Assembly (NCBI GenBank): GCA_004431415.1
Contig: QPMI01000017.1
Location: forward strand, 310,001 to 374,000
DNA length: 64,000 bases
Direction of reading: 5' to 3'
Source of the DNA: Cyanophora paradoxa CCMP329
Lineage: Eukaryota > Plantae > Glaucophyta
The translations under genes and the position numbers were made by a program. The notes beneath the pieces were generated by a model. The model saw only the letters and a list, made by a program, of their open reading frames with translations, made no database searches and had not been told where the DNA came from. Below, piece by piece: positions 19,570-61,471 of this stretch (its first letter is position 1; the number at the start of each line of letters is the position of its first letter).

Positions 19570-21006
19570 TCAGTGGGAGCGCTCGCGCTTCTCCTGCTTG
19601 GCGGCGGTGATGGCGGCGAGGCGGACGAAGTCGAGGGAGATAGATTCGAGGGCCGGCCCCGCGGCGAAGGGCGCGGTCGGGGCAGGCGATAGGGGCGTGG
19701 GCGAGGCCGCCGCTCCCGACGGCGATTTGGGCTGCGGGAGGGCCAGGGAGGCCAGGGCGTTCGGCGGGATCGGGGGCAGGGCGGGGAGGGGTATGCTGAT
19801 GCAGCCGCCGGGGGGGTAGACGAGCTCCTTATGGAGGGAGGCGCGGAGGTTCGCCTCTATGGTGCCGTGGACGGTGGGCGCAGCGAAGGGGATCACGTCG
19901 AAGTTGGTTACGCAGCGGAGCGACTTGAGCGGGTCGTTGAGGAAGCGGAGGGTCAGCATGCCCTGCCGGACCAGCCCCGCCGCCGGCGCCTGCCGCGGCG
20001 AGCCCGTCGGCGTGAGCCGGCCGGCGGAGGGCGTGCGCTGCCGGTGCGGGGGCGCCGATGCGGGGCTCCACATGCGCTGCCCGAAGGGCGAGGGGGGCAC
20101 GGAGAAGGGCGGGGAGGGCGTGCGCGGCTCGGGGGAGTCGGAGCAGGCGGAGCGCGGCGAGGAGGAGCTGCCGCTGTGGGCGGGGCTGACGGGGCGGAAG
20201 ACGGAGGAGCGCATGGCGCTGCTGCTGGCGGTGGCGAGCGAGGGCGGCGCCGAGGTCGCCCCGCCCGACGCGAGCGAGTGCCGCAGGCTCAGCGCCGCGC
20301 GGTGCATCACGGGCGAGTCGTGCAGGCTGCCCCGCCGCACGGGCTCCTCGCACGCGTCCAGCTGCAGGTCGTACTCCTCCACCGCCGCCGTCGAGAGCGC
20401 CGGCTCGCTGGCGCCGGAGTCGGAGCCCGGGGGCGCCGGGACTAGCTGCTGCACCGCCCCGACCTCCACCGCGCCTTCTATCTTGAAGTCCGTGAGCGTG
20501 AGGTCAAGGGGCATGATGAGCGGGTTGGCCGCGGCGAGGATGCCCAGCTTCTTCCGCGCCCAGCCGCTGCGTGGGTTCGAGGTCGGTGCCAGTACATTCG
20601 CCTGCGCCCCGAGAACAGAGAATGTTAGCCGCGGAATGGCGCAATCATGATGCATGCGCGCCGGCTCCGCGAACCTGAATCGTAGTCTCGAAGCGCAGGA
20701 GGGCATCGCCATCGTATTTAAAAGAGAATGCAATCTTCGCGTTCTCTTCGGAGAGGTTGAGCACGTCGGTGATTGCCACCTGGGGCGCCTGGCGCAAGCA
20801 TGAGTGAAAGGACTCCGGGCGGGCGCGCGGCAGCGGAAGCTATAACGCACTTTCTCGCCGAACCGAAGTTCAAGCACGTTGAACTTGCCCGCAATCGAAG
20901 GGGGCATCTTGGGTTGGGAGTTGAGCGCGTCGGTCAGCAGCTTCTTGGCGCTCGATATGAAGATCTCATCGGCGTCGAACGCTGGCCAGCTGAACTGGAA
21001 GGCCAT
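19570..21006 (-). CDS. MDM34: ERMES subunit Mdm34 (SMP domain)
   Basis: MAFQFSW...AKKLLTDALN...P.I...V.EL.FG|..P...F.YDGDA...T.IQ|AN.L...LAAA.PL.MPL.LTL...GMLTLRFLNDPLKSL...FD.IPF matches the fungal Mdm34 pattern as recalled. Confidence 0.85.
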   Translation of the reverse strand: MAFQFSWPAFDADEIFISSAKKLLTDALNSQPKMPPSIAGKFNVLELRFGEKVRYSFRCRAPARSPFTHACARRPRWQSPTCSTSPKRTRRLHSLLNTMAMPSCASRLRFRFAEPARMHHDCAIPRLTFSVLGAQANVLAPTSNPRSGWARKKLGILAAANPLIMPLDLTLTDFKIEGAVEVGAVQQLVPAPPGSDSGASEPALSTAAVEEYDLQLDACEEPVRRGSLHDSPVMHRAALSLRHSLASGGATSAPPSLATASSSAMRSSVFRPVSPAHSGSSSSPRSACSDSPEPRTPSPPFSVPPSPFGQRMWSPASAPPHRQRTPSAGRLTPTGSPRQAPAAGLVRQGMLTLRFLNDPLKSLRCVTNFDVIPFAAPTVHGTIEANLRASLHKELVYPPGGCISIPLPALPPIPPNALASLALPQPKSPSGAAASPTPLSPAPTAPFAAGPALESISLDFVRLAAITAAKQEKRERSH

Positions 21007-21788
21007 CTTGAGCTCTTCAAGCCAGGCCCGGACTGTGCGCGCCCGCCGGGGCTGACGGGATGACGCCGGTGGCTGCAAAGCAGGGAACAAGCTCACAGCT
21101 CGAGCACGGCTCCGCTTAGCTAGAGCGCCCAGCTGCGATGGGCCGCCCTGCTCGATGACTCTACCCCCTCGGGGCTCGTGCCCCCTGGGCGGGGGTGGGA
21201 TCGACCACGAACGGGGCTCCAACGTTAACGTGTTGCGAGGTACCGGTACCCGGTAGTAGGCCGGTACCGTCGGTACTGCGGTACCTCTGCGATCGCCAGA
21301 CCAGCCTCTCGCGATCGTCGGCCGCGGCCGCGGCCGGATCCGGAGTCTGCGCGGGAGTCCAAGCAGCCTTCCGCCGCTTCTTTTGCAGTACGCCGTACCG
21401 TATACCCAAAGTCGTACGTAGGACGGTCGGGAGGCTGCAGGCAGCTTCATCGTCACCGGCGCCCGCCCGGCCGTCTATCAACTGCATCAGCTGCAGCCGG
21501 GATCGACCAGCCGTGTGCATATATAGCTGGTGATTTGGGCTTAAGCCGCCCGATCCTTGCCCGCAACCGGTACCTGCGAGCAGCGAGCGTCGGTTACTCG
21601 CTTTGAGAGCGGTCGCATCGCAAGCAGGGAGTTTCTCAGTCCATCCCTCCGTTCGCCGAGTGATTTTGGCCGGAATCTGCCGCTCCAGGACTCGGCTTCG
21701 TGAACACAGCTGCAGCGGCACAGCAGCTCGTCCAGCTGCGCCCAGAAGCGGAGGCCGCCAACAGGCAGCCTGGCAGACAGTCCACGGC

Positions 21789-23430
21789 ATGGCTTCTTTC
21801 AGCGTGATCGAGGTCCGCGGGCGTGCGCTCGAGAGCGCCGCAGTCGCCGTGAGGCCCGGAACGTTGACTGAGGCGGGTGCCAGGGCCACATCTCGGTGCC
21901 AGTCAAGTACATGCCGTTTGAAGATGCAGCGCCCGAAGCAGCCACCGACGAGACCGTCCAGCTTTCGTGCGCCCCCCCGCCCACCACCTGTCCCTCCCCG
22001 GCTTGGGCCGGTCCGGGCCCGCGCCCCGCCCCGGATCCCCGCTCACGCCGCCTCCGAACAGATACTCGGCCTGGGTTCCCGCCGGGGGAGCCGCGAGCGC
22101 CGGCGGCCGCGGGCCCCGCACTGTAATCCTCTTCTGCCAGTGCGCCCCCCCGGCGTCACGGCGTCTGCCCGCCCCGCCCCCGCGGCCGGCCCCGAGCTTT
22201 CCGCCCCGCAGCGGTGCCTTCTCGAGCCGCTCCGACGCCAAGAGCACGGGGCAGGCCCTCGCCCCCCAGGGGTACGCCCGCCAGCCCCTCGGCTTCGCTC
22301 CCGCCCCCCGCCGAATCGCGTGCCCCCAGGATCGCTGTGTACGCGCACGACCAGCGCGGCTGGGGCCGCGACTGGAGCGGCACGAAGGGCTTCGTCCGCA
22401 GCCGCCGCGACTACATCGGCGTACGCCCTGGGCCTTCCTTCTCCTGGCCCCGCCCGGGGAAACCTCACCGGGGTTGCGCGCGGGGGGCGGGCAGGACGTG
22501 GCGACGTTCGCGCGGGTGATCAGCAACCTGCACGCGGAGCGGGACGGGCAGGCGCCGCGCATTTTCCTGGCCGGCCACAGCATGGGCGGCCTCATCGCGC
22601 TGGCGACGGCGCTGACCTTCCCCCGCACCTTCGTCGGCTGCATAGGGATCGCCCCCTGGCTCGACACGAACGCCCCTGTACCCGTCGTCCTCCGCGCCCT
22701 CGCCCCGTGCGTGCGGACCGGCGCTACCCCGAGCCCGACCGTCCCGCACCGGCGGCTCACGGGCGGGCCCGCCCCGGGCCGGGGGAGCAGGGTGCTGAAC
22801 TGCATGGCGCCGAAGATGTCGAGCAAGGCGGAGCAGCCGAGCAGCGACTTCACGAACGACCCCAAGGAGGCGGCCCGCGCCGACGAGGAGGAGCGCACCG
22901 GCATCCGCTACAAGCGCGGCACCATCCGGTGCGCCCCAGAGGCGCGAGGCGGGGGGGCCGCCTGGGGCCCCCGGAAAGAAAGGGAAGAGAAAGAGAAAGG
23001 GGGCGAGGGAAAGAGGAGAGAGCGTGGGGGAGAAAAGGGAGGGTGGCCGGGGCCCCTCCCTCCCCCCAGCCCGGCCTGATGGTCGCGGCCGGGGGGCAGG
23101 TGGTTCGTGGAGTGCGAGAAACTGCAGAAGCAAGTCCGGGAGGGGGCCGGGCGCCTCTCGATGCCGCTCTTCCTGGCGATAGCGGAGCAGGACGTCTCCG
23201 TCTCCAACCCCGCCATCGAGGCGCTGGCCAAGGCGGCCCCCAAGGGCGCCACGCTGCGCAAGTACGCGGGGAAGCACGACCTGGGGTACGAGGTCGCCGA
23301 GGTCCGCGCCGCGCTCTTCGCGGACGTCTCGGCATTCATTCAGGCCTCCCTACCGGGGGCCGCCCCCTCCTCCGCCTCCGCCCCGGCCACCGACACCGGC
23401 GCCGTCCTCCCCGCCACCAACGCGATCTAG
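21789..23430 (+). CDS. Alpha/beta hydrolase, monoacylglycerol lipase / lysophospholipase family
   Basis: VILFCHG, VYAHDQRGWGR, LAGHSMGG, MPLFLAIAEQD, YAGKHDL. Confidence 0.9.
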
Positions 23431-23544
23431 ATCGGATCCGAGGCGTAGGACGGTTATTGCGCTTCTTAACGTTATTGCTAGTCAGGCTTTAGTATCTTGC
23501 ATTGGATCTAGATTGCGTGGTTGTATGAGGCCCCAGCGGGTTGG

Positions 23545-25280
23545 TCAAGATATTATTCTTAATGCACGTACACGCGAATTAAACGGGGGCTCCGGCCCCG
23601 GGGTCGGGGCCCGCGCGGGCGCGGCGCCCCGGGGTCGGGGCCCGCGCGGGCGCGGCGCCTCCGCCAGCGACGACAGGTTTAGGAGAGCGTGCGCTAGCCG
23701 AAGCCGCAGCGCTAGCCAGCCCCCCACTCTACATCTGATTGCCGACCTCGCAAATCAGATCACATTTGCTACCCTGCAAAAAGCACGGGAGTGGAATGGA
23801 AGCGTAGGCGTGATGGGAGGCGAGGGAACGGCCGGGCGGGAGGCTGGGGCGGGGCGGGCTGGGGCGGGGCGGGGCTGGGAGGATATACTCCACGGGGGCA
23901 AGGCGCCGTCATTGCAGCCGCGGGGACGGGCGGCTGGCGAAGAGACCCCGCACGGCCTCCTTCGCGGCCTCGTACCCGGCGGGATCCGGAGGCCCAGAGA
24001 TACTCAGCTCCACCTCAGGCCGGAGGCCGCGCAGCATCTGGCGCGCGGTTGGTCGGGGCCGGCGGGCCGGCGGGGCGGGGCGGGGCGGGGCCGGCTGGCA
24101 GGCACCTCGAAAGTGCGGAGGGGTACGTCGGTCTGGGAGAGTGTCCTGTAGCACTGGATGCTGAGCTCGAGGCGCTCGAGGGCCGGCAGCGCCAGGACCG
24201 CCCCCGCCCCCGCCCCTCCCGGCGTCCCGTCGATGCAGACAGAGGTGGAGGAGGGTCGTCACGGCGCGCCGCGCGCCGGCGCTGGCGAGGAGGGCGGCGA
24301 CTTGCTCGGGCCCCAAAGCGGAGGCCCCGCCCGAGCTTAAGTCCGAGTCTGCGTGTCCCGATGCGCGAGGCACGTGAGCGCGAGGCGGGGCTGGAACGAG
24401 GCCGGGAGCTCCGGCGCACCGAACAAATAGAGAAAGAGCCGGGCGAGGCGGGGCAGGCCGGAAAGGGCCGCCGCAAACCCGCGCACGGTCGCCGGGTCGC
24501 GCATGTCAAACCCGCGCACGGTCACGGGGTCGCGCACGGTCGCCGGGTCGTGGTGAGGACGCGCTCTCGCCGGCGCTGCCGAGGAACTCGATAACGGCCT
24601 CGTGTCCTTCTTGCTCTCGGTAGAGGGGTCACTGCATGTCTGACCGTGAGGGGAGGAGCGCGCGCCCGCGGGGCCCGCGCGCCGCTCGACTCACCGGTGA
24701 GGCTTATCCGGAGCGCCTCCAGGCGGGGTAGCGCAGCGAGAGCCTCCGCCAGAGCTTGCGCGCCGCTCTCGGAACCGAAAGCGAAGCGACCCCCCGCAGG
24801 GGCGGCCGAGGCGGGCGCCCGAGAGGCGGAGGCGGCCGAGGGCGAGGGCGGCGGCGGGTCCGGCCCCATCCGCTCTGATCTGCGGCGGGATCGGCGCGGG
24901 CAAGGCCGCATCGGAGACTTCGAGTCGGACGTGCAGGCCTTCGACACACTCCAGGAGCGGAATCGCTCGGCTTGATCGCTCAGCTTAACACAGCCTCTCG
25001 AGTGTCGACGTCTCCTCCGTCTGCCCCGCGGCACTCGAAGTCGCTTGCCGCTTCTGGCAGGTCTGCGTGCGGTCCTCGGTATGCGTATGGGGCAGCGAAT
25101 CTACGCACGCATCCGAACCTACAGACGCATCCGCATCAGCGCGTCGGTCGCTACAGCGCATCTGCTTCTGAAGTTGCGCGGGCCAGGCCGTGTGCCGACC
25201 GCTGTTCACTTGCTGCATGGTGGTCGGCGCTCGCAGAGCTCCACGCGGCAATCGTACCCCGCAAATGCGTCATCCCCCAT
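23545..25280 (-). CDS. Hypothetical LRR-like protein, boundaries uncertain, possibly degenerate
   Basis: ALAEALAALPRLEALRISL and FAAALSGLPRLARLFLYL repeats; internal DPxTVR tandem repeats at ~24473-24552. Confidence 0.4.
23595..23659. repeat. Perfect 31 bp tandem duplication
   Basis: gccccggggtcggggcccgcgcgggcgcggc x2. Confidence 0.9.
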
Positions 25281-25807
25281 TGGCTTCCCTCAGGTTCCCT
25301 GCCTTCAGCAGTCGCGGAGGGCTTGTAGCGCGCCCAGCACTCAGGACAAGTGTGAAGTCGCCAGAAATACGAACCGCCTCCGCAGGCGGGGCACTCGGCG
25401 ACCGGTACCGGTGCGGTTTTCCTCCCTCGGTGCGGTTTTCCTCCCCTGGAGTCCAATAGTGGTCATTCGACCAGGGAGGATGCCAGCAACGAGTCGTGCT
25501 CGTTGAAACGCGCTCTCAGCTGGTTTGACTCGCGGAGCGACCGTAGGTGCTGCTTTTTCGACTTCGACTTGCCTTCAATTGCTTATGATTGCCTTCGAAT
25601 CAGATTGCGCGTGCCAGCTTTACGTTCCCGCCCCGGACGTCGACAGCGCGCGCGCGGCCGCAGCCAGCGCTGGCGCAGGACGAGTCGGTACGCGTACGCG
25701 TATTGGACCGCGTTATTCTGCGCATTTTGTGTATTTATCTTTGTCCAGACACGCGACGCAACCGGAGCTGTCGAACCGGCGCCGGCGCCAGCTATAGCTA
25801 GATCGGA

Positions 25808-27654
25808 ATGGCGCCCACACCCAAGGAGCAGTTCGAAGCATTGATCGATTTTATCGAGAAGTTCGTGGCTCTCCGACCCGGCCCTCTCAAGCCGCCCGGC
25901 CCTCGCGAACCGCCTATGTTGTTAATGTTGTCGCATTGCATGCGCAGCTATTATGATCATGATCATGAGGACCGAGAAAACGACCACTGCCGGCGCCATG
26001 TTTTCGAGGTCGAATCCGCAGAAGCTATCGCTTCATCGACACGCGGCCTTCGAAATCGAGCCCGGAAGATTGACGAGAGCGCCCCTTTCCTTCTGAATCC
26101 AGCGATCAAGCACGGAAAGAACAGCTTCTCCATGCAAATCTTCGTCAACACGGACCCCGGAGACCCCTTGAACCCCGAGGCCTACGAACCCGCCACCGTT
26201 TATTACGTCCCAAAGAACTCGCCTTACTGCGGCAGAGAGATTTATACCGAGAAGCTACAGTCTGGTGCGCCAGAAAGATTTGATTTCGCCTTACTGCGGC
26301 AGAGAAATTTAATGTTAATTTAGCCATGATCAGTTCAACGCGTACGGTTGCTTATTTAATTTCTTTAAACTTGACCCATGGCGTCCTAGATCTAGAGCTC
26401 ATGTACGTATACATTAATGTAATATTTACACTTGCAAATGCAGGCTTCTACATCGAAACCCAGCCAGGCCGGCGATTCATCGTTGTCGCCGAGCACTGGG
26501 GTGAGGCTCTCGATGTGCGCACGTACAGCTCGGAGACAATGAAGCGGGAGAAAAAGAAAGCAGGGGCCGGAGCCCGAGTTGAGCTCCACTTCGATGTGTG
26601 CCATTTGCAGATTTCAAATTATTATTCCCTGTAGCGTTCGCGTCTCGGGCACTGATTTTTGTTTTTATTCTCAGCTCTCTCTTGAACCAAATTACTGTTA
26701 CACGGTCCCGCCCGGCGGTCGTTATGCCGTGCTCGGCTCAACAGTACTAGTGCACAATGCCCCCATTGTGCGGCCGTTCGTCTTCAGCGAAAACGAATTT
26801 GTCGAGGTCAGCAGCTCCGGGTCCACCGCTGCAGCTGGCGATGCGGCGGCCTCCAGCTCGAGCTCGTCCTCGCGATCGGCCGCGCATCCCAATGGAGCTG
26901 GCGAAATTAAGATGGAGTTTTTTACCAGGCTTGAGAAAGTTGTGAAGAAGCCAAAGCTCCAGCCGCCATCGCCGCCGCCGACGCCACCGCCGCAGCCACC
27001 TCCACCACAGCCGCAGCCTTCAACGCCCAACGTTAATTTGCAGCCTGTAGCTGCTGCTTCGCAGTCTGCGGCCGAGTCTCAGCCCGATCGTGATCAGTCA
27101 GCTGCAGCCTCATCCTCTGCGACGCCAGCAGCCCCCGTCGCGACCAGCCCGGCCATCAAGAAGGACAGCAAGCTTGCCATTTCCATCGGCGCCCTTGCGA
27201 CTGTCGACCAAGAAAACTTCTTTGTCTGCGACGACGACTACAAGCTGGAGCCCCCGGCGCCGGCGCCGTCCCCTTCGCCACCAGTCCACGCGTACGCCAG
27301 CTTGGATCCGTCCCATGGCCAGCCCAGCGGAAACACAAACGGCAAGAAGGGAAAGCAAGCGGCTGCTGCTGCAGCTGGCGTTGATCACGAGAAGAGCCAG
27401 GGCAAGAATTCGAAGTTGGGCTCAGAACAAGGACAAGATGCCATTGACAAGGAGAAGGACAAGGGCAAGTGCAAGGACAAGGAGAAGGGGAAGGAGAAGG
27501 ACAAGGACAAAGAGCCCAAGAAGCCTAAAACTCCGAAGAAGCGCCCCGAGCCTGTGATCGAGTGCCTGAGGACGGAAAAGCTGGTCACCCTGACGGTCTA
27601 CTACCGCTCGAAGCTGTGGATGGCGCTGGCCGGCCTCCGCCCCGACCTCGTCCG

Positions 27655-27685
<31 letters not shown>

Positions 27686-28401
27686 GAGGGGAGCTCGAGC
27701 CAAGGCGACGCCAACGCCGGCGCAGGCTCGAGCGGCGCTGGGGCGCAGAAGAGCAACAGCGCGCCGAAGAAGGATCCGGTCTTCGTTGGTGCGTTCCAGC
27801 CATATTAATATGTTGTTAATGCTCTTAAGCCAAAAGACCTAACATATCCCGCAGACCTGAGCTCTGACACTGAGGAGGAGGCGACGTTCCTCCCTGCGAC
27901 GTTCTGTCCCGACACCGGCATCGAGCCCGTCAACTTCAACCTGAAAATCTCCGGCTGCCCCACGGTTTGCCTCTCTTTCTGATCATGGGTGGAGCACGTG
28001 TACGGCCCTCGGCCCGCTGACCGAAGCGCAGGCGGCGGAGCTGTACAAGGCGGTGGCGGCGGCGGCGGAGGTCGGGCCGCCGCCGCGCGGCAAGCGCCAC
28101 GTCGTCTCCTTCCATGACGGCGATAAAAAGGTGCCGGCCGCCTAGGCCTAGGCCTGCATGTAGCTGCCACGTGCACCTAGAGCCGGTCACAATCGATTGC
28201 AATTGGGAGCAGGGGCCGGGCTCGAGCTCATCATCACGCGTGCGGCCCCCGCATGCGCAGGTGAAGATCCTGCCGAAGCTCTCGGACCGCTCGTACTGCA
28301 GGCTGCGGGACAAGGCGACCGAGGTCTTCATCATCCTCGAGACCGTGAACCTTGAGACCGTGATTGAGGAGGACCCCGACAGCGCACCCGAGGACACCTA
28401 G
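25808..28401 (+). CDS. Hypothetical protein, possibly DUF7918-like, in a lower-GC segment
   Basis: Spliced FYIETQPGRRF...VRPFVFS...GEIKMEFF...TLTVYYRS, Lys/Glu-rich linker and AT-rich introns. The family assignment is from memory. Confidence 0.55.
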
Positions 28402-29279
28402 ATCTAGATCTAGAGGCTACAGAGTGCTTTTCTAATGCTTTACTTTGTTGTATTGCTCGGCCGGCCGCGGGGGCTTCGCCTTCACAACTTCCGCCGCGGC
28501 CGGCGCGGCTCTTTTCATAATCAGTTGTCCCTTGGTATTTGGCCTTCCTGTCCTGATTTTTTTTGGCTTCTCAGAGTCTGCATGTCAGATACAGGTGTGG
28601 GGTGCCCCCAAATCGTTAGTGCGCATCGGGGGTGCCCCCAATATTGTTGCTAGATTCTCCAGTTGCATTTGCAATGCTTCATCGAATATTTGTATCGGTG
28701 TTGCAGTATTAATTAATTGAAGCCAGCTGCAGTTCAAGGTTATAGGCGAGCTTGAGTTAGAGTGTAGCGGGCACCGTGCTCGTTAGATCAGATATACTGC
28801 TGCGCATGCTTCAAATTTCATTCCGAAGTTCATGATCATGATCAGGAATAGCGCAGCTCAGCGGCTTTTCATGATCATGATCATTCATTTGAGTACTGAC
28901 TAGCTGCGGACGTCCGGATGACTCTAGGGTCACCTAGAGAGATCGTTCACGATTATCATTCCGCAGTGCCGCGGTGCCAGAAGTATGATGACGATATCGG
29001 ATCAAACCGGTACCGTTGAGCGGCTGATCATGAACTCTCATGATCATGAGCAGCTGCAGGCTTGGCCTTGGACCCCGTCGCGGCGCCCGGGGCCCCTACG
29101 CTTTAAATTTTTTAATTCGAAGCCGCTGCAAAATTGCGAGCCTCGTACGCAAATTTGCAAGCCTGTGCGTACATGTGATCATGATCATCGCGATCGGATT
29201 ACAAGCTTAAGCTAGTACTCGACGGACGCGCGGGGCCGGGTGGCATAGCGGGGCGGGGCCCCGGCCCGCGGCGGGGCGG

Positions 29280-32200
29280 CTAGAAGAGGCCGAGGGTCAT
29301 GCGGCCGAGGCCCTTGCCCTCCTGCCAGTACGACTCCAGGAAGTGCTCGTGCCACCGCAGGTGCGCCTGCCGGGGCCGAAGCTTAAGGTGAGAGGGGGCG
29401 GGGCCGGGGGACGGGCGGGGCGGGGCGGGGACCTTCTGCTGGGGGCTGGGGGCGGGGAGGGACTGGAGGTAGCCGGCCCAGCGGCGGTGCCAGTGGAGGC
29501 GGTTGCGGGGGTCGTCGAAGGGCGCCACCCCGCGGTCCTTCTCGTCCAGCAGCAGCGCGTCCACCGCCTGGCGGCCCGTGAGTCAGCGAAAGAGGAGACG
29601 AAAGGAGCGGGGGGCGGGCACAGCGACGGCGTCGGCGTCGATGAGGGTGACGACGCCGTCCCGCACGCTCGTCAGCCCCGCCAGCACCGCCCGCAGCCGG
29701 CACCAGCGCGCCCCCGCCACCGCCGCCCCGCTGGCCCCGGGTCGCGCCCCCACTCCGAGCCGCGGCCGCGCCGCCGCCGGCTGCAGCACCTGCGCGGAGC
29801 GGGCGAGGCTCAGATCGCTCAGACGTGATCATGGGGCGGGGGGTACGCGGACGCGGAGGAGGTCGGGCTCCGGGGCGCCGCGCTCGGTGACGCGGACGGC
29901 GCGGACGGCGTCGGCGAGCTCGGGGCCGTACTCGGCGGCCCAGCGGCCCAGCACCGCCCCGTAGAGCTCCGGCACCGAGCGCGCCTCCAGCAGCCGCTCC
30001 GCCGCCGCCCGCACCGTCTCGTGCCGCCCGTGCAGCCTGCCGAGAAGAAGAAACAGCTCAGAAGACGCGGGGGAGCTCGAGTGAGACATGAGAGGAGGCG
30101 GACGCGAGCTCGTCGGCGAAGAGGCGGAGGAAGAGGGGCGGGCGGGGCAGCTCCTTGAGGCGCGCCAGCACGGAGGCCGCCGTCTCGGGGGCGAGGCGCT
30201 TGGCCGCCAGCGCGAGGCGGCGCTCGACGAGGTCCAGCTGCTGGTCGGGGCGGAGGAGGGCGGGGACGGCGAGGGCGCGGAGGCCCCGGGTGCGCACGAG
30301 GGCCCGCGCGAGGCGGTGCGAGGCCGGCGAGGCGCCCAGCGAGACGACGAGGAGGAGGCCCCGGGGGAGGGCGGCGGGGAGCCAGCGGAGCTCCAGGAGC
30401 CGCAGATCGCATGCGGCGGCGCCGGCGCCGGCGCCGGCGCCGGCCGGCGGGCCCCGCAGCTCGTCCACGGCGTCGAGGACGAGCACGAGGAGGCCGCCCC
30501 GCGGCACCGCCCGCGCCGTGTCTGCGCCACGGCGAAACTTGTGAGCGCGACGGAAAGTAGAACTCGAAGGGCGCACCGCGGAGGAGGCGGTTGAACATGC
30601 GGACGAGGTCGCGCGCGTCGGCACCGGAGGCGGCGGCGACGCCGTCGGCGGCCACCTCGTCGGCGTGCTGCGGGGCCCGCGCCGCGAGGTCCGCCGCGAT
30701 CGCCCGCATGGCGCCCTGCGCGTCCAGCCGCAGTCCGCCGCCCCCGCCGCCCCCAAGTGGTACACCAGCGCCGCCCGCGTCGCTCCGGGGCGCGCCCCCG
30801 CTCCCGCCCACCGCCGCGCCTGCCCGCCGTTAGACGCACGCTTGCATAGAAAAGAGGTGGGGGAACAGAGGGCGCGGGCACCCAGGCGGCGAGGAGGGCG
30901 GACTTTCCGGCGCCGCGGTCCCCCGTGACCACCACGCTGGGGACCTCCTCCCCCGCCGCCTCCTCCCCGCCCCGCGCCGCTGCGCCGCCGCCCCTCAGAG
31001 GCGGCAGAGGATGGAGGGACGGAGAGCTGAGGAGGGCGCGCCGGCGGCGGCGAGGCGGTCGAGGGACGCGAAGAGGTCGCGGCGCTCGACCCAGCCGCGC
31101 ACGAGGGCGCAGCCGAGCGCCTCGGAGGCCCGCAGCGCCCGGCTCGGGCCCTCGCCGGCCCCCTCCAGCGGGAAGCAGCCGGCGACGGCGGCGCGGAAGT
31201 GCGCGAGGACCGCCTCGGCGAGCTCGCGGGGCGGGAGGCGGCCCCGCAGGAGCGGCAGCCCGCTCGCCCGCACCTCCTCCCGCAGCGCCCGCATCCGCTC
31301 CTCCGCGTACGCGCCCTCGGCCCCGCCGCCCCGCCGCGGCGGCCGTACTCCTCCTCCTCCTCCTCCTCCTCCTCGCCCTCCTCCCGGATGTAGAAGAGGG
31401 AAGTGGGGCAGGGCGGGGGCACCGCCGGCGGCTCCAGCGCCGCCGCGGCGGCCTCGGCGGGCTCCTCGGGCGTCCCGTCGAAGCGCAGGCGCCGGCGGGC
31501 GCGCCCGGCGTGCGCGGGGCCGGCGCCGCCCCGCCCCCGCCCCCGCCGCCCCGCCGCCGGCCTCCCGCTCGTGCTGGAGCCGCAGGAGCGCCCCGTACCG
31601 CATCTCCAGCTGCGCCGCCCCTCAGAAGGGACCCCGGAGACACCGAAGGGGCGGCGGGCCTCGGTGACGGAGCGGTCGGGGTACAGGGAGACGAAGGGGA
31701 ACTCCTCGGCGGCCGCGCGCACCGTCGCCGCCAGCAGCGCGTCCCGCGGGGCCCCCGGCGCCTGGTGCCAGCCGTACCGCTGCCCCAGCTGCCCGGCCCC
31801 CGCTCGGCCTAAGGACCCGGACCCGGACCCGAGGGGGTGCTTGGGGGGGGGGGGGGGGGGGGTACGGCACCATGCCGAGGAAGAAGGGGCGGCAGCGGTC
31901 GACCTCGCGGAGGCAGAGGGAGAGGGCGCGCCCCGCCCGCGACTCGTGCTCCGTGATGCCCCTGTACCCCCCAAGGCGAGGCGGGGTTGGGCGGGCCGGC
32001 GCGGGGGCGAGCGCGGACGCATATGGCGGACCAGCGGAGGTCGACGACGACGAATCCGAGGGAGCGCTGGGCGCAGGCGTGGGCGAGCGCCGGCGCCGCG
32101 ATGCGCATGAGCGCCTCGCGCTCCGGCCCAAAGTCCAGGAAGGTGCTGCTCACGAAGAGCCGCACCGTCCGCTCCCGCAGGCACGCCCCCAGGTCCGCCC

Positions 32201-32640: not shown

Positions 32641-32648
32641 GCCCGTAG

Positions 32649-46871: not shown

Positions 46872-47038
46872 GCCCCGCCTTGCGCTCGGTCTTCCGCGCG
46901 GGCCCCCTGAGGGGGCGCGCGCCTGTACATTACTTCCTCCCTGAACAGTTGTATTCTACACCAATTTCGAGCTAGCTAACCGCAGCCTTCCTGCCTGCCT
47001 GCCGATCTGTCTGCCCTGTCTGCTTCTGGCGGGCGCGG

Positions 47039-49210: not shown

Positions 49211-49242
49211 CCAGTGCGCTGGCACTGTACCCGGGTTGGGCA

Positions 49243-50933: not shown

Positions 50934-51277
50934 CAAGCTAGCCGGGGCTGCAGCGCGTTCTCAGAGCCTGGAATCATCGGATTTGAATCGCGTTTATTTC
51001 TGATTGACAGAAGGCTACATCAGCTGCAGCAGGTATCGGAGTAGCAGTTGTAGTTGTACGTAGTTGTACAGGGTTAAAGTAGTAGTGCAGGGTGTTATAG
51101 TACATGTACAAAGTAGCTACAAGTGAGAACATAGAATGGACGACTGTACAGGCGGTCCCAAAACGACATCGCATCTAAACAGAATAATGAAACACCTAGG
51201 GAACTAACAGAGAAAAGTACAGACCCCTTCGGGGCAGTTTAGTTACACGCCGGCGGACGGCCGGGCCGTTTATATAA

Positions 51278-51995
51278 TTATCTGTATATCTTGGAGAAGA
51301 AGGCGCGGAGGCCGCCCTTGCGTCCCTGGGCCGCGCAGACGGCCGCGGACGGGGTATCCGAGCGTTCGACGAACTCCCAGTCGCCCGCCGGGGCGGCGGG
51401 ACTCGCCGCCGGCTCGTCGGCGATGGAGGAGTAGCTACGGACAGCCGGCAGGTCGACGATGTCCTGCGATACGGTAAGGACCCGGAAAGTGCGGTCGAAG
51501 CCCGCGACCGGACCTCCTCGTTCAGCCCGTCGAGGTCCTCCAGCTCGGTTGTCAGGACGTCCAAGTCAATGACGTCCACGCCGTTTAGCTCCTGCGCGTT
51601 CAAGCAGTGAGAAACAGCTGCGTGCACGCAGAATACGGAATGGGAACGGCTGGGGCGCCGCGCTGACGCTTCGGCCACGGGCACGCGGCGTGCGCGCGGT
51701 ACCGGTCTGTTATGGTTTTAGGCCGGCGCACCTGGCGCGCGGCGGTATCTTCTGATTGAGGCAGGGCAGTAAAGCTGATTTCTGCTGCACCCCGCGCGAT
51801 GCCCAGCTTCCTGAGAGAGATCGCTGCCTCCAGCGAAAATTCGAAACGGAGGTCACGCCGCGCCGCCCTGCGGGGAGCTGACAGATGAAGCGGCAGATGC
51901 TGGCAGATGGACTGCGCATTCTCCGCAGGGAAGCTGATATCGCTGGGGCTCAGGGGCGACGCGGCTCCTGGCAGGGAGAAACCGGCGCGCTGCAT
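51278..51995 (-). CDS. Small acidic hypothetical protein; start uncertain
   Basis: Clean GT-AG joins ELNGVDVIDLDVL...LNEE|DIVDLP...DWEFV...GLRAFFSKIYR*. Confidence 0.45.
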
Positions 51996-52244
51996 AGCTC
52001 TCTAGATCTGGATAATGCTGCTTTGGTGTTCCTGTACCGTCCAGCTGCCGCACAGGTTTCGGCTGATTCTGAGGAATCACTGTATAAGACCAAGACACTT
52101 TGCACGAAGCTCGTACCCCCAAACCCGGACCTGTCCGACCTGCTTTCTGCTGCTCGGCGTTCCGGTGCAGTTCGACGCAGCTGGTACGACGCGTAGGGCG
52201 CTCTGGCACTTTTAGCAAGCGGGTTTGCAAGCGGCGTGGACGCT

Positions 52245-54068
52245 ATGTCAGTCAAAGCGGTGTTGATGGTCGGCGGGCCGACGAAGGGCACGCGCTTCCG
52301 GCCCATCTCGCTGTCCTCGCGCTGGATCCCGAAGCCGCTCTTCCCGATTGCCGGGCGGCCGATGATCCTGCACCACATTGAGGCGTGCGCGAAGCTCCCT
52401 TCGCTGAAGTCCATCCTCATGATCGGCTTCTACGAGGAGGAGGACTTCTCGGAGTTCGTACGGACCACCTCCGCCCAGCTGAACATCCCCATCCGGTGCG
52501 CCCCGGTGCGCCCGGGCCTCGCTGCCCTCCGCTAATACGTCTTTTTAGCTACGTTCGCGAGCCGGAGTCGCTCGGCACCGCCGGCGGCCTCCACCATTTC
52601 CGCAAGATGATCCTCGACGGCAACCCGGAGTACATCTTCGCCATGCACTGCGACATCTGCTCGAAGTTCCCTCTGCAGGAGATGCTTCAGTTCCACAAGA
52701 CGCACGGAGGCCCCTGCACCATCCTCGGCAAGCGGGTGCGCGGCCCGCGTGGCGCGCGTACGGCCGGTCGGCGAGCGGGGCGAACCGGGCGTGCGCGCGG
52801 CAGGTCTCGAAGGACGAGGCGCGCGCGTTCGGCTGCATGGCGATGGACCCGAACACGCACGAGATGATGCACTACGCCGAGAAGCCCGAGTCCTTCGTCA
52901 CCGACCTCATCAACTGCGGTGCGCCGCGCGCGCCGCCGCCGGCGCGCCGGCTCACGTGCTCCCTCGCAGGCATCTACCTCTTCTCGCCGAAGATCTTCGA
53001 CACGTTCGCGGAGGTGGCGGAGGAGTTCAAGCAGAAGCGCTCGGAGGCGAGCGTGAGCTCTCCAGCGCACGGCGACGAGCTGGCGCACCACCTCGAGTCC
53101 CTACAGAACCTCCCCGTCGGCCACATCCGGTCCGCCGCCGCCGCGCCGCCTGCCGCGCCGCCTGCCGCGCCGCGCCGCGCCGGGCGCGAGGCGAGGCGGC
53201 GGGGCGGGCAGGCTGGAGCAGGACATCCTGACGCCCCTCTCGGGCCGCAAGCTCTTCTACGTCCTGGAGACGACCGGACCCTGGATGCAGATCAAGTCCC
53301 TCGGCGCCGCCCTCCGCTGCTCCGAAATGCGCGCCCCGCCCCGGCCCGCCCCCGCGCCGGCCGCCGTCGCTGAGCCGCCCGCAGATACATGGACGCGTAC
53401 CGGACGGCACACCCGGAGCTGCTGTACCCCGGCGTGCCCCCGCGCCCCGGCCCGCAGTGCGCCCCGCGCCCCGCCCGAGGCTCTCCGAGGTCGAGGGGGC
53501 CTGACGGGGGGGCAGCCCGGAGATCCAGGGCACGGTGATCATCCACCCGTCCGCGGAGGTGCACCCGACCGCCCGCCTCGGGCCCAACGTCTTCATCAGG
53601 TGCCCCGGCGCCTCCGCGAGGCCGCGCCGCCCGCCGGCGCTGAGGGCGGCGGGCAGCGCGGGGGCGAAGATCGGGCCCGGCGCGCGCGTCAAGCACTCCA
53701 TCGTGCTCGACAACGCGGACATCCGGGTGCGCCCCGCCCGCCCGGCCTCACCTCCGCCTCCTTCAACGCGGCGGCAGGCGCACGCGTGCGTGCTGTACGC
53801 GGTGGTCGGCTGGGCGAGCCGCATTGCGCAGTGGGCCCGTGTCGAGGGCCGCGCCGACTTCGACCCCTCCAAGACCGACCAGGTGCGCGCTGCGCTGCCC
53901 CCCCGAGCCCCGCGCGCGCGCCCTGACGCGCGGGGGCGGGCGCAGTCGAACGGGATCTGCATGTTCGGGGAGGGGGTGACGGTGGAGCCGGAGCTCGTCG
54001 TGCGCTCCTGCATCGTGCTGCCCCACAAGGCCCTCGCCAAGTCCTGCCACAACGAGGTCATATTGTGA
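52245..54068 (+). CDS. GMPPA: Mannose-1-phosphate guanylyltransferase alpha / regulatory subunit
   Basis: VGGPTKGTRFRP...[70 protein letters not shown]. Confidence 0.95.
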
Positions 54069-54462
54069 GCCCCGGCCGGGCCGCCGTACGCCTAGGCCGG
54101 GCGCCCCGCCGGGCCGGGCCGGCTGGCTTTTTTTCCAGAGTAGGCTTGTCGACGTCCAGTTACCCAGCAGAGCAGGAGTGATACTGTATACGTAATTCTT
54201 TACGGCTAACATGTACACGCGGCGGCGCAAATGGCTCCTAACTTGAAACCGTTGAACAAAAATGAACCCTTATCTACTATGAACACTTAAAGCGCGAATG
54301 TGCGAACACAGTATACCCTAAGCGCAAAAGCAAGCTAATTATAAGTACGTTTACGCTAGCTACTAGCTATGAGTAACTAACTCTACGGCGCAAGAAAGAG
54401 TCCAAGCTTTAAGATTGAAACAGAAATGGCACGCGTTCCTCTGATCGGCCTCGAGCTCGCCG

Positions 54463-57400
54463 TCATGTCTTGCCGCGGCGTCGCTTGCCTCCGGACGCCC
54501 CGTCTGGCGCCCCCTCCTGCGGGGGCGCGCCGTCGGGACGGGCTAGTGCGCCCGCAGGCTTCGAGAGCGACGCGGCGTACCTGAGCGGCCTGGGTGGTGG
54601 CGGCGGTGTCGGCGGCGGCTGGGCCGGACTTGGGCGGGGCGGGGCGGCGGGGCCGGCCGCGGGGCCTGGCGGGGCTCGCCTGCTCCCCGTCCCGCCGCCC
54701 TCCTCGTCCTGGGGGCGGCCCCCGCCCCCGCCTGCGCCCCCGCGTCTTCGGCGCCGCCTTCGCGCTTTCGCCGCCGCCCGCGCCCGCGCCGCCGGCCGGC
54801 CCCCGCGCTCACTCGGGCCGGCCTCCGGAGACGTGGCGGGGCTGGGCCCTCGGCTCGCGGGGAACCGGCCCGGACGGCGACGACGCCGGCGGGCGGGCCG
54901 CTGCCGCCGCCGCCGCCGCTGCCGCTGCCGACCGCGCGGATCGCCGGCTGCTGCGGCCGCTGCTGCGACGCCGCCCCCAAGGGCGCGCCGGGGGCGCCCC
55001 CGGCAGCTGCCGGCCCTCCTTCGGGCCCCTGGGGCGGCCCGGGCGGCGCCGCCGCAGAGCCCGACCCGGGGTCTCGGGCGGCGGTCCCCGCCGGTGCTCC
55101 TGCTCCGACGGGCGCGACCTGCTGCAGCTGCGTTTGGCGCGGCGGTTCCTGTTGCGGCTGCGGTGGCTGCGGCGACTGCTGCTGCTGCTGCTGGTGCTGC
55201 TGCTGCGGTTGCTGGTGCTGCTGCTGCGGCGGCGGCGGTTGCTGCTGCACTTGCTGTTGCTGCTGCGGAGGCGGCGGCAGCGGCTGCGGCGGCTGGTATT
55301 GCTGTTGTTGTGGTTGCCGGTGCTCTTGCTGCTGCTGGCGACGCTGCTGCTGCTGCTGCTGCTGCTGTTGCTGTGTCTGCTGGTGCCCCTGTTGCATTCC
55401 CGGATGCGGCTGTGATAGCTGCTGCTGCGGCTGCTGCGGCTGCGGCTGTAGCTGGCCGGGGAAGGCGGGGGCGGGGACGAGCATGGGGACGACGCTCAGG
55501 CCGAGGCCGCCCAGGGTCAGCCCCCCGAGGCCCGTCGGCGCCCCGAGGGCACCCCCGGGGCCCACCGCCACGGGGACGACGTGCGGCCCCATCGGCATCG
55601 GGTAGGCCACGGGTCCCGAACTCGCCGCTTGAACGCTTGCCGCCGCCGGCCGTTGGGGCAGGCGCGGCTGCCCGGGCGGTGGCGCCTGCATCAGCGGCCG
55701 CGGGCGGTGCTGCTTGGGCGGTGCACTCGGCTCCCTGTTCTTCCGCGGCCGGCCCCGCTTCCGCTTCTCGGGCTGCCGCACACTCAGCCGCAGGCGAACG
55801 GGGCGCGAGGGCCGGGACCGCTCACCACGGGCTCGGCTGCTGGCGCAGGGGTAGGGGCGGAGGGGGCCTCCGGGCCCCGCAGGGCGAGCGGGACGGGGGC
55901 GGGCTGGAAGAAGCCGCCCCCCGTGGGGAAGTAGGCGGTGCCGACGAACGTGGGCGCCTGCGCGGCGCCCTGGAAGGAAGGCACGTGAAGGAAGCCGTGG
56001 CCGGCGGAAGGGAAGCCATGCCCCAGCTGCTGCTGCTGCTGCTGCGGCTGCTGGGGCAGCCCCGGCTGGCACATGCCGGCGGGGATCAGCACGGGGCCGC
56101 CCACGCTGAAGCCCGCCAGCGCCATCCCGTGGGGCCCCATCTGCAGGCCCCCGGGGCTCCAGAAGAGCCCCGTCCCGCCCTGCGCGTTCCCAAGCGCCGG
56201 CGCCGGCGCCGCCGCCGCCGACGACGACGACGACGAGGACGAGGACGACGCCGCCGCCGGCATCGGGCTCGGCTGCCGCTGCCCCTGCGCCTCGGCCGCC
56301 GCCCGCACCGCCCTCTCCGCCTTCTCCCGCGCCGCCTCTGACCCCGCCCGCCCGGTCGGCCCGGGCGGCTCAACAGCGCGGCGCGGCGCGGGGCGGCGCG
56401 CACTCTCCCGCGCGTCGCGCTTGTTCGTCGCGCGGAGCATCTGCGGGGGCGGCCGCGGCTGCAGGTCGGGCACCCAGAGGGTCTGCCGCCCCCCGATCGT
56501 CTCCCGCTGCACAGCGTGCCTCCCTGCGCCCGCCCCGCGGTCAGGGCCGAGAGAGGACAGAGAATCAGACAGGAGGGGCGGGGCTCGCCCATGTAGAGCG
56601 CGTTCTTCTTCGCGTGGCGGACGTGGACGAGCCAGTCCTCGGGGAGGCGCCCCGCGTCGCCCTCGACCTCCACCGACATCCGCACCACGCGCTCCATCAC
56701 GCCCCGCAGCCGCCCCGCCTGCTCCGCCTGCCGCCCCGTCCAGTGTACGGCGCGCGCTCTAGAGGGGCGCGGGCACCGTGAGGGCGGAGGCCATGGTCAA
56801 GGGGTGCACGCGCAGCTGGAAGCAGATCTCGTCCGCCATCCTGCGAGGAAGGGGACCCTACCCTCGGCCCCTTCGGAAGCCCTGGGCCCCCTGCGAGGCG
56901 CTCGCACCAGTTCCCGACGCCGCCGACGATGGAGTTGTCGATGAGGGCGCACTTGAGCGACGCGGTCTTCTTCCCCAGGATCCCGATTATCGTCGCCTCG
57001 TCCGGCATCTCCTCCAGCGCGTCCCTGCGGGGGGTACGTGCGCTCGGATCCGCGGAGAGGGAGGGAGGGAGGGAGGGGGAGGGGGGGGGGAGGGGGGGAG
57101 GGGGAGGGGAAGCGCACCGAACGACGGCCCTCACGTCCCGCATCCTCGGGTCTGCGAACGCCCGTCACGTAGAGACCAGGGGCTAGTGGGGAGAAAGGGG
57201 AGGAGAGGAGGGGGGGGGGGGTAATCGATTTGTGGGGGGATCTAGCCCCTAGCCCCCGCAGGTATGACAGGGATGGAAGACGGGGCGGTGAGGCGTGGCG
57301 GAGTGCAACCAAAGGGAAGGGGGTACTGCAGATCGGCTGGCGGCGGGGGGAGCTCGAGGCGGGCACCCTCGAGGGTGCCGACGCGGATGCGCGTGCACAG

Positions 57401-57970
57401 GCGGCGGATGCTGCCGAAGGCGAAGCGGTCGACGCCGTCGATGGTGAACTCCACGCAGGCGCTGTACGGCCGGTCGGCCTCCGTCGAGTAGAAGTGGAAG
57501 TCCCCATCCAGCGTGAACGTGAAGAAGGGATACGGCTGCGGCGGGCGCAGAGTAAGCGCGACAACAAGAGACCCTACGAAGGTCCCAAGCTCAAGGGGCC
57601 CGGCCCGGCCCGCGCACCGGCTGATCCAGTTCGAACCACTGCAGGCCAGGCGGGCCGTGAGCGGCGCGGCGCAGCGCGGAAAAAGGAGCAGGGCCGACGC
57701 ACGATGAACTTTGCGCGGCGTACGCACGCTTGGATTCGCCGCCCGACGAGCTTGGCGAGCTCGGCATCGGACGCGTCGACAACCGTGTTGCCCTCCGCTC
57801 CGCGTTCGGTCTACGTACAGGGACGCGTCACCCGTCGCAGATTGTGCTCAACTGGTTGTACCTAACGAGCGCACCGACTTCACCCAGAAGGCAGTGATGG
57901 TGCGCCCGCGCAGCATCTGCTCGGCGCGCTTCCTCATGAGCTCGACCTCTGGAAGCTCCACGGGGGCCAT
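54463..57970 (-). CDS. Fpg/MutM-family DNA glycosylase (plant/fungal zincless type) fused to an AT-hook and Gln-rich tail
   Basis: MAPVELPEVE, RRAK, LKCALIDNSIVGGVGNW|MADEICFQ.R.HP (H2TH), GGRQT.WVP.LQ, KRKRGRPRK, poly-Q. Confidence 0.85.
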
Positions 57971-58306
57971 GGCTGCAGCAGCTCAGAGCTGCAGCGCAGC
58001 TCTGCGGCTAGCCCGGGGCTGCGGCTGCAGGCCTGGATCCGGACTTCGACCCAGCCAGGGTACCGATATCCGCCCGCTGAAGAGCTCTCCTGCCCCGCAC
58101 AGTACGCAACCTAAGTTGAACGGTTACCGGTACCCAATTTGCAACTAAGTAAGATCAAGAAAAGTTGCCGGCAAACCCGCCCCGAGCTCGAGCTGCCAAA
58201 ACCGTCAACGATGCGATCATGATCAAATTCCCATGCCGATTCCGAATTCCTGGCCCCGCCGCAGCGGCATGCCACCTCACGCGTAGGCGATCTAGATATG
58301 CGCAGA

Positions 58307-59843
58307 TCAGACGGTCCGTGCTGGCGGCTCCGTCCTCGCGCGCTTGGCCGTGGGAGGGCGATCCGGATTCTCGAGCTCGGCGCCGGTCATGGCGCCGGAA
58401 GTCTCGGCGGGCTCTGCGGCCCTGGGCTGCTGCTGGTTGGGCCCATCTTCTTTACCGAGACTCGGCCCCGGCGCCGCCCCGTGGTCTTTTGCAAGCACCA
58501 GCTTGGCCAGCCTGCTGAGGGCGGCGCCCGCCCGCCCGCGCAGCAGCCACTGCAGCGCCCAAGCACCGATCAGAAAACTCTTGAAATGCGGTGTTAGATG
58601 TAGCCTAGTTGCGGGCCCGCCTCTGGGGCAGCTAACGCTAGCGCGCGCTGCAAATAGAAAGCACAAACGCGTGCGGCTTACTGTGGCACGGCTGTCCAGC
58701 GGGGTGGGGTTCGCGTTAATGATCGCCAGAGACGCCCCCGACTGCCGCAATCTGTGTAAGCCGCGGCTGCTTCGTCGACGGAGCGAGCGCTGCACCTCGA
58801 GGGCGATCTGAGGGCGAGGGGCGGCGTCAGAGATCTAGAAAGCCCGAGGCCTGCAAGATCGAGGGCCCTGGAGCGCACCTCGGGGATGAGGCAGGCCGGC
58901 ATCACGGCGAGGCTCGAGCCGACGACGACGCACAGGTCGCCCGCCCTCAGCGCCCGCGCCGCCTCCTCCGCCCGCTCCCACGCCCCCTGCGCGCGCACGC
59001 CGCGGCGTCGGCGTCGGCGCCCGGCCGCGTCGGCCGCGTCGGCCGCGTCGGCGGCGGCTGCGCACGGGCGGGAGGTCCTCTCCGAAGAGGAGGTCGTCGG
59101 GGCGGAGCTTGCCGCGGCACCGCGGGCGCCGGCAGAGCAGCTCCTCCCCGCAGCGGTAGGCCCCCTCCTTGTACTCCTCCTCCGAGAGCTCGCGCGCCGG
59201 GAGGACCGTCCGCGAGTCCGCCGTCTGGCCGCACTGCATGCAGCTGACGGTCCTGCGTGCACCGTCAGCGTTTCGCGAAGCGCGAGCCGCGGGCCGGGCG
59301 GCCACGGACCGCAGGTTGCCGTGGAGCTCGACTACCTTCCGCGAGCCAGCGGCCTGGTGGAGGCCGTCGACGTTCTGCGTCACGATGAGATCGACGCGCC
59401 CCGCTGCCTCGAGCTCCGCCAGCGCCCGGTGGCCCTCATGCGGCTCCACCTCTGCAGGCGTAACTCGCTCAGATGGCTTCAAGGGAGAGTCATCCGAGCC
59501 CACTCACCCCACAGCGTCTTGATGCGGCAGTGGTAGAATGCCCAGAACTGCCGCGGCGATCGGCGGAGGTACGCGAGGGTGCAGAGCGTCTGCGGGTGCT
59601 GGCGCCAGAGCTAAAGTGGCGTGAGCGCGCGAAAAGCGCGGCGCGGCGAGCGCAAAAAGCGCGGCGCAGCGAGCTCACCCCCGTGGCGCTTCTGAAGTCC
59701 GGAATTCCGCTCTCCGTGCTTAATCCAGCGCCTCCGAACACCAGGATGCGCGACGCGCCACGCCAGGCGTCGGCAAGCGATCTCTCGGCCGCCGGGTCGC
59801 TGGGGAGCTCCGGGGGCGCATGCGAGCAGTCCGCGCGCCTCAT
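58307..59843 (-). CDS. Sir2-family NAD-dependent deacylase; start approximate
   Basis: GGAGLSTESGIPDFRS, TQNVDGLH, ELHGN, CMQC..C..C, RPD...FGE, VGSSLAV.PA, IINANPTPLD. Confidence 0.93.
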
Positions 59844-60139
59844 AGACGGCCAGCACGTCCGGCGAGGCGCCTCGGAGGTCAGCGCTTGGTTGCAGTCGTC
59901 GCAGCTAACAACAGCGCTCGACAGCCACGTGCGCAGGCCATATGCATCGGCCGCGCACGAGCGGCACGACCCGCCCGCTGGCTGGTAGGCCCGTGGCCGT
60001 CTCCACTCGACTCGCGTACCCAAGACGACTACATCGTAACCTTAACTACCCGCCCTACGCAGATCAGCGAGGAGCCAGCAAAGCAGCGAGCAAAGCGTGT
60101 ACGAGCGGGCCGCGCTGGGTCGGCGCGCGGTGACCGGCG

Positions 60140-61471
60140 ATGCTCAAAATCAACTGGGAGCTCGTCGGAACGCCAGAGCGCGAGCGCGCCTGCGTGGATT
60201 TTCTCAATGAGAGCTTCCGCAAGTGAGCGCACACGGCGCCGCCGCCCCGCAGCAGCGCAGCATGCCTTGACACCGCCTCTCGCAGGTTCGCGTCGCAGAA
60301 GCCCGACGTGCTGGGCGATCTGAAAGTCGAGAGCGTGTGCTTCGGCTCGACGCCACCGGTCTTTAAGATTCTGGCCGTCTCCACGGACCTGCCGCCCGAC
60401 CGCCCTCCTGCTGGCCCGCGGCGCCCGCGGGAGGCAGGCGATGAGAGTTCCAGGCGGTTAGACGGCGCAGCGGCGGGCTTCCCGCGGAGTCCATCGCAGG
60501 ACAGCCTCGCCAGCGCGGGATCCACGGACCACTTCGCCGGCGCCTTCCCGCAGGTCCGCTCGCTCCCCGCCGCCCGCTCTCTGGCGCCGCTCGCGACGCG
60601 CGAGCTGCAGGGCCTCTCGGGGCTCTCTGTGCGGTCGGGCGGCTCGGCGGCGCTGGGGCGGGACCCGGAGCACAGCCTCGCCGAGCTGCGGCTGGAGCTC
60701 GGGATGGAGTGCGCGCCGCCCGCGCCGGCCCCCCGCCAGCCGCCCCTGACGCCCCCGGAACGCAGGTACGATGGGGACGCCCGCATCGCCATCTCCACAG
60801 ACTTCCGAGTGGTCCGCCGCCCCGCCCCGCCCCGCCGTCCGCCACTCGCGCCTTAGCTCTGCGCCCGCAGAACGTGCCGATCCCGGAGTTTTTGAAGCTG
60901 CCGCTGGCGGTCTCGATCGACAAGCTGACCTTCCGGGGTACGCTGGTCGTCGAGTACTGCGGCGACTCCATCTCCGTCTACTTCCGCGAGGACAGGCGCG
61001 CCCCGCCCCGCCCGCCCGGCCCGCCCCGCCCGCCCGCCCGGCTCCGAAGACGAAGCGGGGCGGCGCAGGGAAGGACCGGAGGCGGGGCCCCTCAAGGAGC
61101 TCGCCTTCGGCATCGGCGTGCGCCCGCTCGCTTCCGCGCCTGTACCCCTCCCTCCGTCCCGCCCCGAGCCGCCGGCGCCGCCCCCCGGGCGCAGATCGGC
61201 GCTGACCCCGCGGTCCTGAAGAACAAGGACAAGGTCAGCGGCCGGCCGCGCTCCCTCGCCGCCGCCGCCCCTCACGCGCGCCCTCGCACCCCCCAGATCG
61301 AGAGCTTCATCTCTTTTTTCATACGGAAGATCATCCGCGAGCAGCTCGTGTACCCCAACCGCCTCGTCCTGCCCCTCGGTGCGCCCCTCCCCGCTCGAAT
61401 CGGATCCCGCCGCACGCCAGCTCACACGCGTGGGCGGCCCTGCAGAACTCCTCACCGCCGCCAAGCCCTGA
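60140..61471 (+). CDS. MDM12: ERMES subunit Mdm12 (SMP domain)
   Basis: MLKINWE...FLNESF, L.V....FGSTPP, YDGD.RI, NVPIPEFLKLPL...I..LTFRG, IG....VLKNKDK|IESFI...IRKII..QLVYPN. No TM helix. Confidence 0.85.

Follow-up and report, generated by a model that had tools for sequence, protein, structure and literature searches.

Does the plastid-bearing glaucophyte Cyanophora paradoxa encode subunits of the endoplasmic reticulum (ER)-mitochondria encounter structure (ERMES), and what kind of tether would they form? This question is raised by a stretch of 64,000 nucleotides (nt) of contig QPMI01000017.1 from strain CCMP329 (positions 310,001 to 374,000), here called the window, in which genes for the ERMES subunits Mdm34 and Mdm12 had been predicted from the DNA letters. 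The window very probably carries glaucophyte orthologues of both. The putative Mdm34 gene lies on the minus strand, with its ATG at 21006 and its TGA at 19572-19570, and its three exons encode a protein of 433 amino acids (aa), identical to EukProt model P0001 (gene id g3523, tig00000093), of which the exon peptides are exact in-order substrings. Frame analysis and reading of the intron ends gave two introns of 62 and 73 nt, both GT-AG. The putative Mdm12 gene lies on the plus strand, with its ATG at 60140 and its TGA at 61469-61471, and consists of nine exons separated by eight introns of 57-77 nt; the encoded 271-aa protein corresponds to EukProt model P0002 (gene id g3542, tig00000093), again with all exon peptides as exact in-order substrings. 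These comparisons establish the structures of both genes, and the ends and strands given in the original prediction (19570-21006 and 60140-61471) prove exact.

The identity of P0001 is indicated by several independent comparisons. In an exhaustive HMMER search of 1.8 billion proteins, residues 1-140 of P0001 gave 420 protein matches at E<=1e-3, 139 of them at E<=1e-10, and among the matches listed the alignment starts at the relative's own residue 1 in nearly all cases. The top match is a protein from the transcriptome (MMETSP1086) of another glaucophyte, Cyanoptyche gloeocystis, and at E 1.3e-25 and 41% identity in a library of this size the similarity is far beyond chance. Named matches include Mdm34 of Smittium and Dactylellina, a JGI entry called 'distribution and morphology protein 34' and an 'ERMES complex subunit' of Balamuthia. 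A leave-one-out Mdm34 hidden Markov model scored P0001 at 193 bits over profile positions 1-184, in an alignment unbroken across both exon junctions, while P0002 reached 31.8 bits in three fragments. The motifs IQANVL, ILAAANPLIMPL and LTLRFLNDPL occupy columns that are nearly invariant in a 58-sequence Mdm34 alignment (Q90, N92, A114, P121, F310, P314 and L315), and the family positions W7 and Y77/G79 are also present in an SMP domain that begins at residue 1. The precomputed database Pfam assignment is PF26545, named Mdm34_N in the ESM Atlas output. Pfam scans returned no ERMES family, a result that is uninformative since true fungal Mdm34 proteins were also blank in that copy of Pfam, from which PF26544 and PF26545 are evidently absent. 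Similarly, phmmer searches of the PDB with P0001 and the unspliced pieces found nothing relevant, because there is no solved Mdm34 structure and the distance to Mdm12 is too great for a search with one Mdm34 sequence. Word-index protein searches with sequences of either gene returned only the window's own proteins, P0001 and P0002. Taken on sequence and profile, P0001 is assigned as the orthologue of Mdm34 (also named Mmm2).

Fungi and Amoebozoa are the groups in which ERMES is typically found, and a contig from a fungal or amoebozoan contaminant would account for ERMES genes that are not algal. The placement of P0001 bears on this possibility. A quick tree of 143 SMP domains of the Mdm34 type, computed by maximum likelihood, unites P0001 with the Cyanoptyche protein and a single environmental sequence without a name, at a Shimodaira-Hasegawa-like approximate likelihood ratio test (SH-aLRT) value of 97. 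This group sits in a clade of 15 rows (SH-aLRT 97), apart from the named fungal proteins, in which the named members are dictyostelids and Balamuthia and the rest are environmental. The wider clade thus includes amoebozoan proteins, as a contaminant might lead one to expect, but the nearest relative of P0001 comes from a second glaucophyte genus. Because its branches are long and it is unrooted, the tree is read no further than to suggest that P0001 is sister to the protein of another glaucophyte and not nested in a contaminant-like group. Furthermore, the G+C content of the window is ~70% throughout, and both genes match it and have GC-rich introns of 57-77 nt. Also, DNA-like and RNA-like runs from several studies, all with one species label, cover the stretch without a mismatch. 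A contaminant origin is hence exceedingly improbable, and we continue with the two genes as those of the alga.

For the Mdm12 gene, the read evidence, which concerns this gene only, extends to expression and splicing. Three runs that are probably RNA and carry one species label, X1 and X2 from one study and X5 from another, each contain a single contig of 1,016-1,043 nt that spans the locus from 60021/60036 to 61567/61580 with zero mismatches and skips eight segments. After alignment shifts, these segments are exactly the eight introns of P0002. In the DNA-like run X16, unspliced pieces cover the locus and the joints are absent, as DNA would give. The Mdm12 gene is therefore expressed and its nine-exon model verified. 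Seven of the eight introns are GT-AG. The fifth is a non-canonical GC-AG intron of 73 nt with 90% G+C, which has been spliced out in the contigs of all three runs. The same locus provided two side observations. In X16, the summed contig depth rises from ~21 to ~500 over two Mdm12 introns (60815-60875 and 60998-61058), where many contigs have loose ends; GC-rich intron sequence of the CCGCCCC type is evidently repeated widely in the genome. Upstream, a sirtuin-like gene is oriented head-to-head with Mdm12. Its first exon matches PF02146 (SIR2) over no more than 20 profile positions, which leaves the match (E 1.8e-4) below threshold. Transcript contigs on the sirtuin side end at 60006 or 60016, and the Mdm12 contig of the same run starts 5-30 nt away (60021-60036), a gap between divergent transcript contigs (60016-60036) that suggests a very compact bidirectional promoter.

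The relationship of P0002 to Mdm12 is visible at the level of individual sequences. Searched against all PDB sequences, its top seven matches are all Mdm12 (E 2.5e-7 to 2e-4), whereas Mmm1 follows at E 1.4. Three blocks align in collinear order, comprising the M..INW helix at the N terminus, the YxGD strands in the centre and a helix at the C terminus that ends in LVYP in P0002 and in LAWP in yeast Mdm12. Mdm12 clusters scored 0.95 in a language-model search with P0002 and share 216 of 256 features with it, and the precomputed database Pfam assignment is PF26544 (Mdm12). A match to PF10296 is below threshold (E 7.8e-4; 19.3 bits against a cut-off of 21.9), and most Mdm12 clusters likewise show a PF10296 match. 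Compared with 150 Mdm34 relatives, P0002 reaches at most 19 bits to any of them. On these sequence comparisons, P0002 is the Mdm12 orthologue. The original prediction had named both subunits, and its assignments are borne out, for Mdm34 by the relatives, the leave-one-out profile and the fold (see below) and for Mdm12 by the PDB matches, the language-model score and PF26544. It had cited the motifs QAN.L, LAAA.PL.MPL and LTL.F.NDPL for Mdm34, all of which are present and fall on nearly invariant columns, and N.P.P.F..LP, IG...LKN..K.E.F and LVYP for Mdm12. Of these, P0002 contains N.P.P.F..LP, LKN..K.E.F and LVYP; the spacing given as 'IG...LKN' is two residues off, as P0002 reads IGADPAVLKN.

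An AlphaFold2 model of P0001, built with an alignment, contains an SMP core with 130 residues at a predicted local distance difference test score (pLDDT) of at least 90, and residues ~150-300 are disordered. A Foldseek search of the PDB with this model ranked Mdm12 chains on top (8.9e-7), followed by the SMP domains of TMEM24, Mmm1 and E-Syt2, and an ESM Atlas fold search ranked Mdm34 clusters first. P0001 is thus modelled with the SMP/TULIP fold. Three points weigh against the assignment of the pair to Mdm34 and Mdm12. First, as no Mdm34 structure has been solved, PDB fold matches cannot tell Mdm34 from Mdm12. Second, the AlphaFold2 model of P0002, made from the single sequence without an alignment, has a pLDDT of 37.7 and is too poor for use, so that the SMP fold of P0002 rests on its sequence alignment to solved Mdm12. 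Third, an insertion of ~155 aa, disordered and rich in S (21%), P (16%) and A (14%), interrupts the SMP domain of P0001 and may affect the lipid path. Insertions in the same loop, although shorter, are found in the Cyanoptyche and Balamuthia homologues, and none occur in fungal and most other homologues. Since the Cyanoptyche protein is derived from a transcriptome and both proteins have insertions in this loop, the segment in P0001 is more probably a genuine loop than an overlooked intron.

SMP domains share a common ancestry throughout, and both proteins could in principle belong to a non-ERMES SMP family, such as E-Syt/tricalbin/SYT, TEX2/Nvj2, PDZD8, TMEM24 or the plastid-associated NTMC2T5. 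The last of these is an SMP family found across Archaeplastida, glaucophytes included, and the P0001 model also resembles TMEM24, E-Syt2 and tricalbin-like SMP folds, with weaker scores. However, these families surface solely as weak structural matches, whereas the sequence matches are specifically to Mdm34 for P0001 and to Mdm12 for P0002. The domain make-up points the same way. Both proteins consist essentially of a single lipid-binding SMP domain (TULIP fold), and in both this domain begins at residue 1, an arrangement also found in Mdm12 and Mdm34. Pfam scans found no C2, PH or PDZ domain in either, and hydropathy revealed no transmembrane segment in P0001 or P0002, with maximal Kyte-Doolittle 19-residue means of 1.43 and 1.10, respectively, both inside SMP strands. 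The statement in the original prediction that neither protein has a transmembrane anchor of the Mmm1 type is thereby upheld. A non-ERMES identity for both proteins is disfavoured and extremely unlikely, and the orthology of P0001 to Mdm34 and of P0002 to Mdm12 is the preferred reading.

How two such subunits might work in Cyanophora can be outlined from yeast, in which the bridge is a zig-zag of three SMP domains, one from each of Mmm1, Mdm12 and Mdm34, and provides a pathway for lipids (PMC7614606). By analogy, Mdm12 would join the SMP domain of the ER-anchored Mmm1 to that of Mdm34, and the beta-barrel protein Mdm10 would tie Mdm34 to the outer membrane of mitochondria; PMC10648710 describes Mdm10 as binding Mdm34 (Mmm2) and thereby anchoring the complex in that membrane. 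The three SMP domains would then form the zig-zag bridge and offer phospholipids a continuous hydrophobic path from the ER to mitochondria. According to PMC5839780, Mmm1-Mdm12 is a minimal lipid-transfer unit. The conservation of the SMP cores of the glaucophyte Mdm34 and Mdm12 suggests, by this analogy, the same role as in yeast, and from it we infer that Mmm1 and Mdm10 are also present and that the proteins assemble, localise and transfer lipids as they do there. Alternatively, both proteins could be true orthologues within a glaucophyte complex that is incomplete or rewired and differs from the four-subunit yeast tether, either without Mdm10 or with another partner or membrane. In line with this, Mdm10 is missing in Andalucia and most discobans that keep three SMP subunits (PMC7050145), and PMC13151913 describes the composition of yeast ERMES as flexible. 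The large disordered insertion in Mdm34 and the lack of an alignable C-terminal region of the fungal type would also fit. Nothing speaks directly against a rewired complex, but the well-conserved SMP cores and family motifs suggest a conserved lipid-transfer role, and we regard rewiring as unlikely. Mdm10 is absent from several lineages that retain SMP subunits, and for Glaucophyta the literature goes no further than the occurrence of ERMES orthologues. The complete ERMES tether that the original prediction saw in Cyanophora therefore goes beyond the present findings and is something that we infer.

The distance between the Mdm34 and Mdm12 genes is 39 kb, or 19 gene models, and the original prediction had given it correctly (~39 kb); no evidence was found that the linkage it pointed out has any meaning. 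In the Cyanophora genome, the published size of which we take to be roughly 100 Mb, two given genes would be expected to lie this close less than once in a thousand times. There are six pairs among four subunits and many complexes have been looked at, and for this reason the linkage is provisionally treated as coincidence. It is very improbable, if slightly less so than a foreign origin of the contig, that the placement of these two paralogues of ancient divergence is not due to chance and reflects co-regulation or a lineage-specific adaptation, for example the large disordered Mdm34 insertion, which is at the same position as in Cyanoptyche. If true, such an adaptation could endow ERMES of glaucophytes with a property that fungi do not show, for instance a regulation of contacts, or a contact to a third organelle where the cell also has a plastid.

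The finding of Mdm34 and Mdm12 in this window is correct, but glaucophyte ERMES has been known since 2013. The original prediction had cautioned that comparative surveys may list glaucophyte homologues, and rightly so: Glaucophyta are listed among the groups with ERMES orthologues in PMC10648710, which cites Wideman et al. 2013 (Mol Biol Evol 30:2044), and PMC5377515 states that ERMES components occur in all supergroups. EukProt, too, already contained both gene models, with correct Pfam assignments. The analysis confirms that glaucophytes, as one lineage of Archaeplastida, have retained SMP subunits of ERMES. This supports published work that traces ERMES to the last eukaryotic common ancestor, with later losses in plants and in red and green algae. 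It adds, modestly, a transcript-verified exon map of Mdm12 with a GC-AG intron, a homology-verified Mdm34 model and the insertion in the Mdm34 SMP domain. A glaucophyte would be a useful system for studying ERMES function in a plastid-bearing cell, a question not opened by the present finding.

Features of the window, with positions counted from its first letter
Feature	Position	Strand	Remarks
Mdm34 exon 1	20851..21006	-	aa 1-52, starts MAFQFSWPAF; exact match to P0001; GT donor at 20850
Mdm34 exon 2	20675..20788	-	aa 53-90; exact match to P0001
Mdm34 exon 3	19570..20601	-	aa 91-433 and TGA; remaining SMP domain, split by the disordered insertion
Mdm34 insertion	19990..20460	-	aa ~146-300, disordered
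Mdm12 exon 1	60140..60222	+	starts MLKINWE; transcript contigs begin at 60021-60036
Mdm12 exon 2	60286..60553	+	joints 60222>60286 and 60553>60611 in runs X1, X2 and X5; match to P0002
Mdm12 exon 3	60611..60708	+	match to P0002; transcript joints; intron ends read
Mdm12 exon 4	60766..60811	+	YDGDARIAISTDFR; aligned with YKGD, a conserved strand in solved Mdm12; transcript joints
Mdm12 exon 5	60871..60995	+	followed by GC-AG intron 60996-61068; joint in three transcript contigs
Mdm12 exon 6	61069..61117	+	match to P0002; transcript joints
Mdm12 exon 7	61195..61233	+	match to P0002; transcript joints
Mdm12 exon 8	61297..61378	+	C-terminal SMP helix, ends LVYPNRLVLPL; match to P0002; PDB alignment; transcript joints
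Mdm12 exon 9 and TGA	61446..61471	+	transcript contigs end at ~61567-61580
Sirtuin-like first exon	59493..60023	-	GAGLSTESGIPDFR
SpoU rRNA methylase open reading frame	16287..17174	+	PF00588, E 2.4e-7, over the family cut-off
Tandem duplication	1864..6655		period ~2.4 kb

Pfam scans of 18 long open reading frames elsewhere in the window gave two matches only, the SpoU methylase and the sub-threshold Sir2 fragment, and thus brought no confirmation of the plastid-targeted neighbours mentioned in the original prediction. In DNA of 70% G+C, most long open reading frames are not genes. In the tandem duplication, three blocks of 147-300 nt repeat at 2403-2407 nt with 97-100% identity.

Set against the known systems, the two proteins differ from Mmm1 (PF10296), with which they have a homologous SMP domain, in that the N-terminal lumenal segment and transmembrane anchor of this ER-anchored subunit are present in neither P0001 nor P0002; the PF10296 match of P0002 is, as noted, below threshold. 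P0001 resembles the Mdm34/Mmm2 family (PF26545), which is found in fungi, Amoebozoa, some excavates and glaucophytes, in its MxFxFxWP.F start at residue 1, in the conserved motifs VQAN.L, LAA..PL..PL and F.NDPL and in having no transmembrane segment. It differs from the family in the ~155-aa S/P/A-rich insertion within the SMP domain, and from fungal Mdm34 in that no region alignable to the long C-terminal part (MDM34_C) was found with a copy of Pfam that may lack the model. P0002 has low pairwise similarity to solved Mdm12 (PF26544; 5GYD, 5GYK, 5VKZ, 5H54, 5H5A and 5YK7), with 31-33 bits at best and 23-24 bits to some chains, and its loop at aa ~63-140 has a lineage-specific composition. Nevertheless, it has the same three collinear blocks, with a C-terminal helix that ends in an aromatic residue and Pro, and it shares with yeast Mdm12 both its size (271 aa) and a disordered internal loop that follows the first strands.

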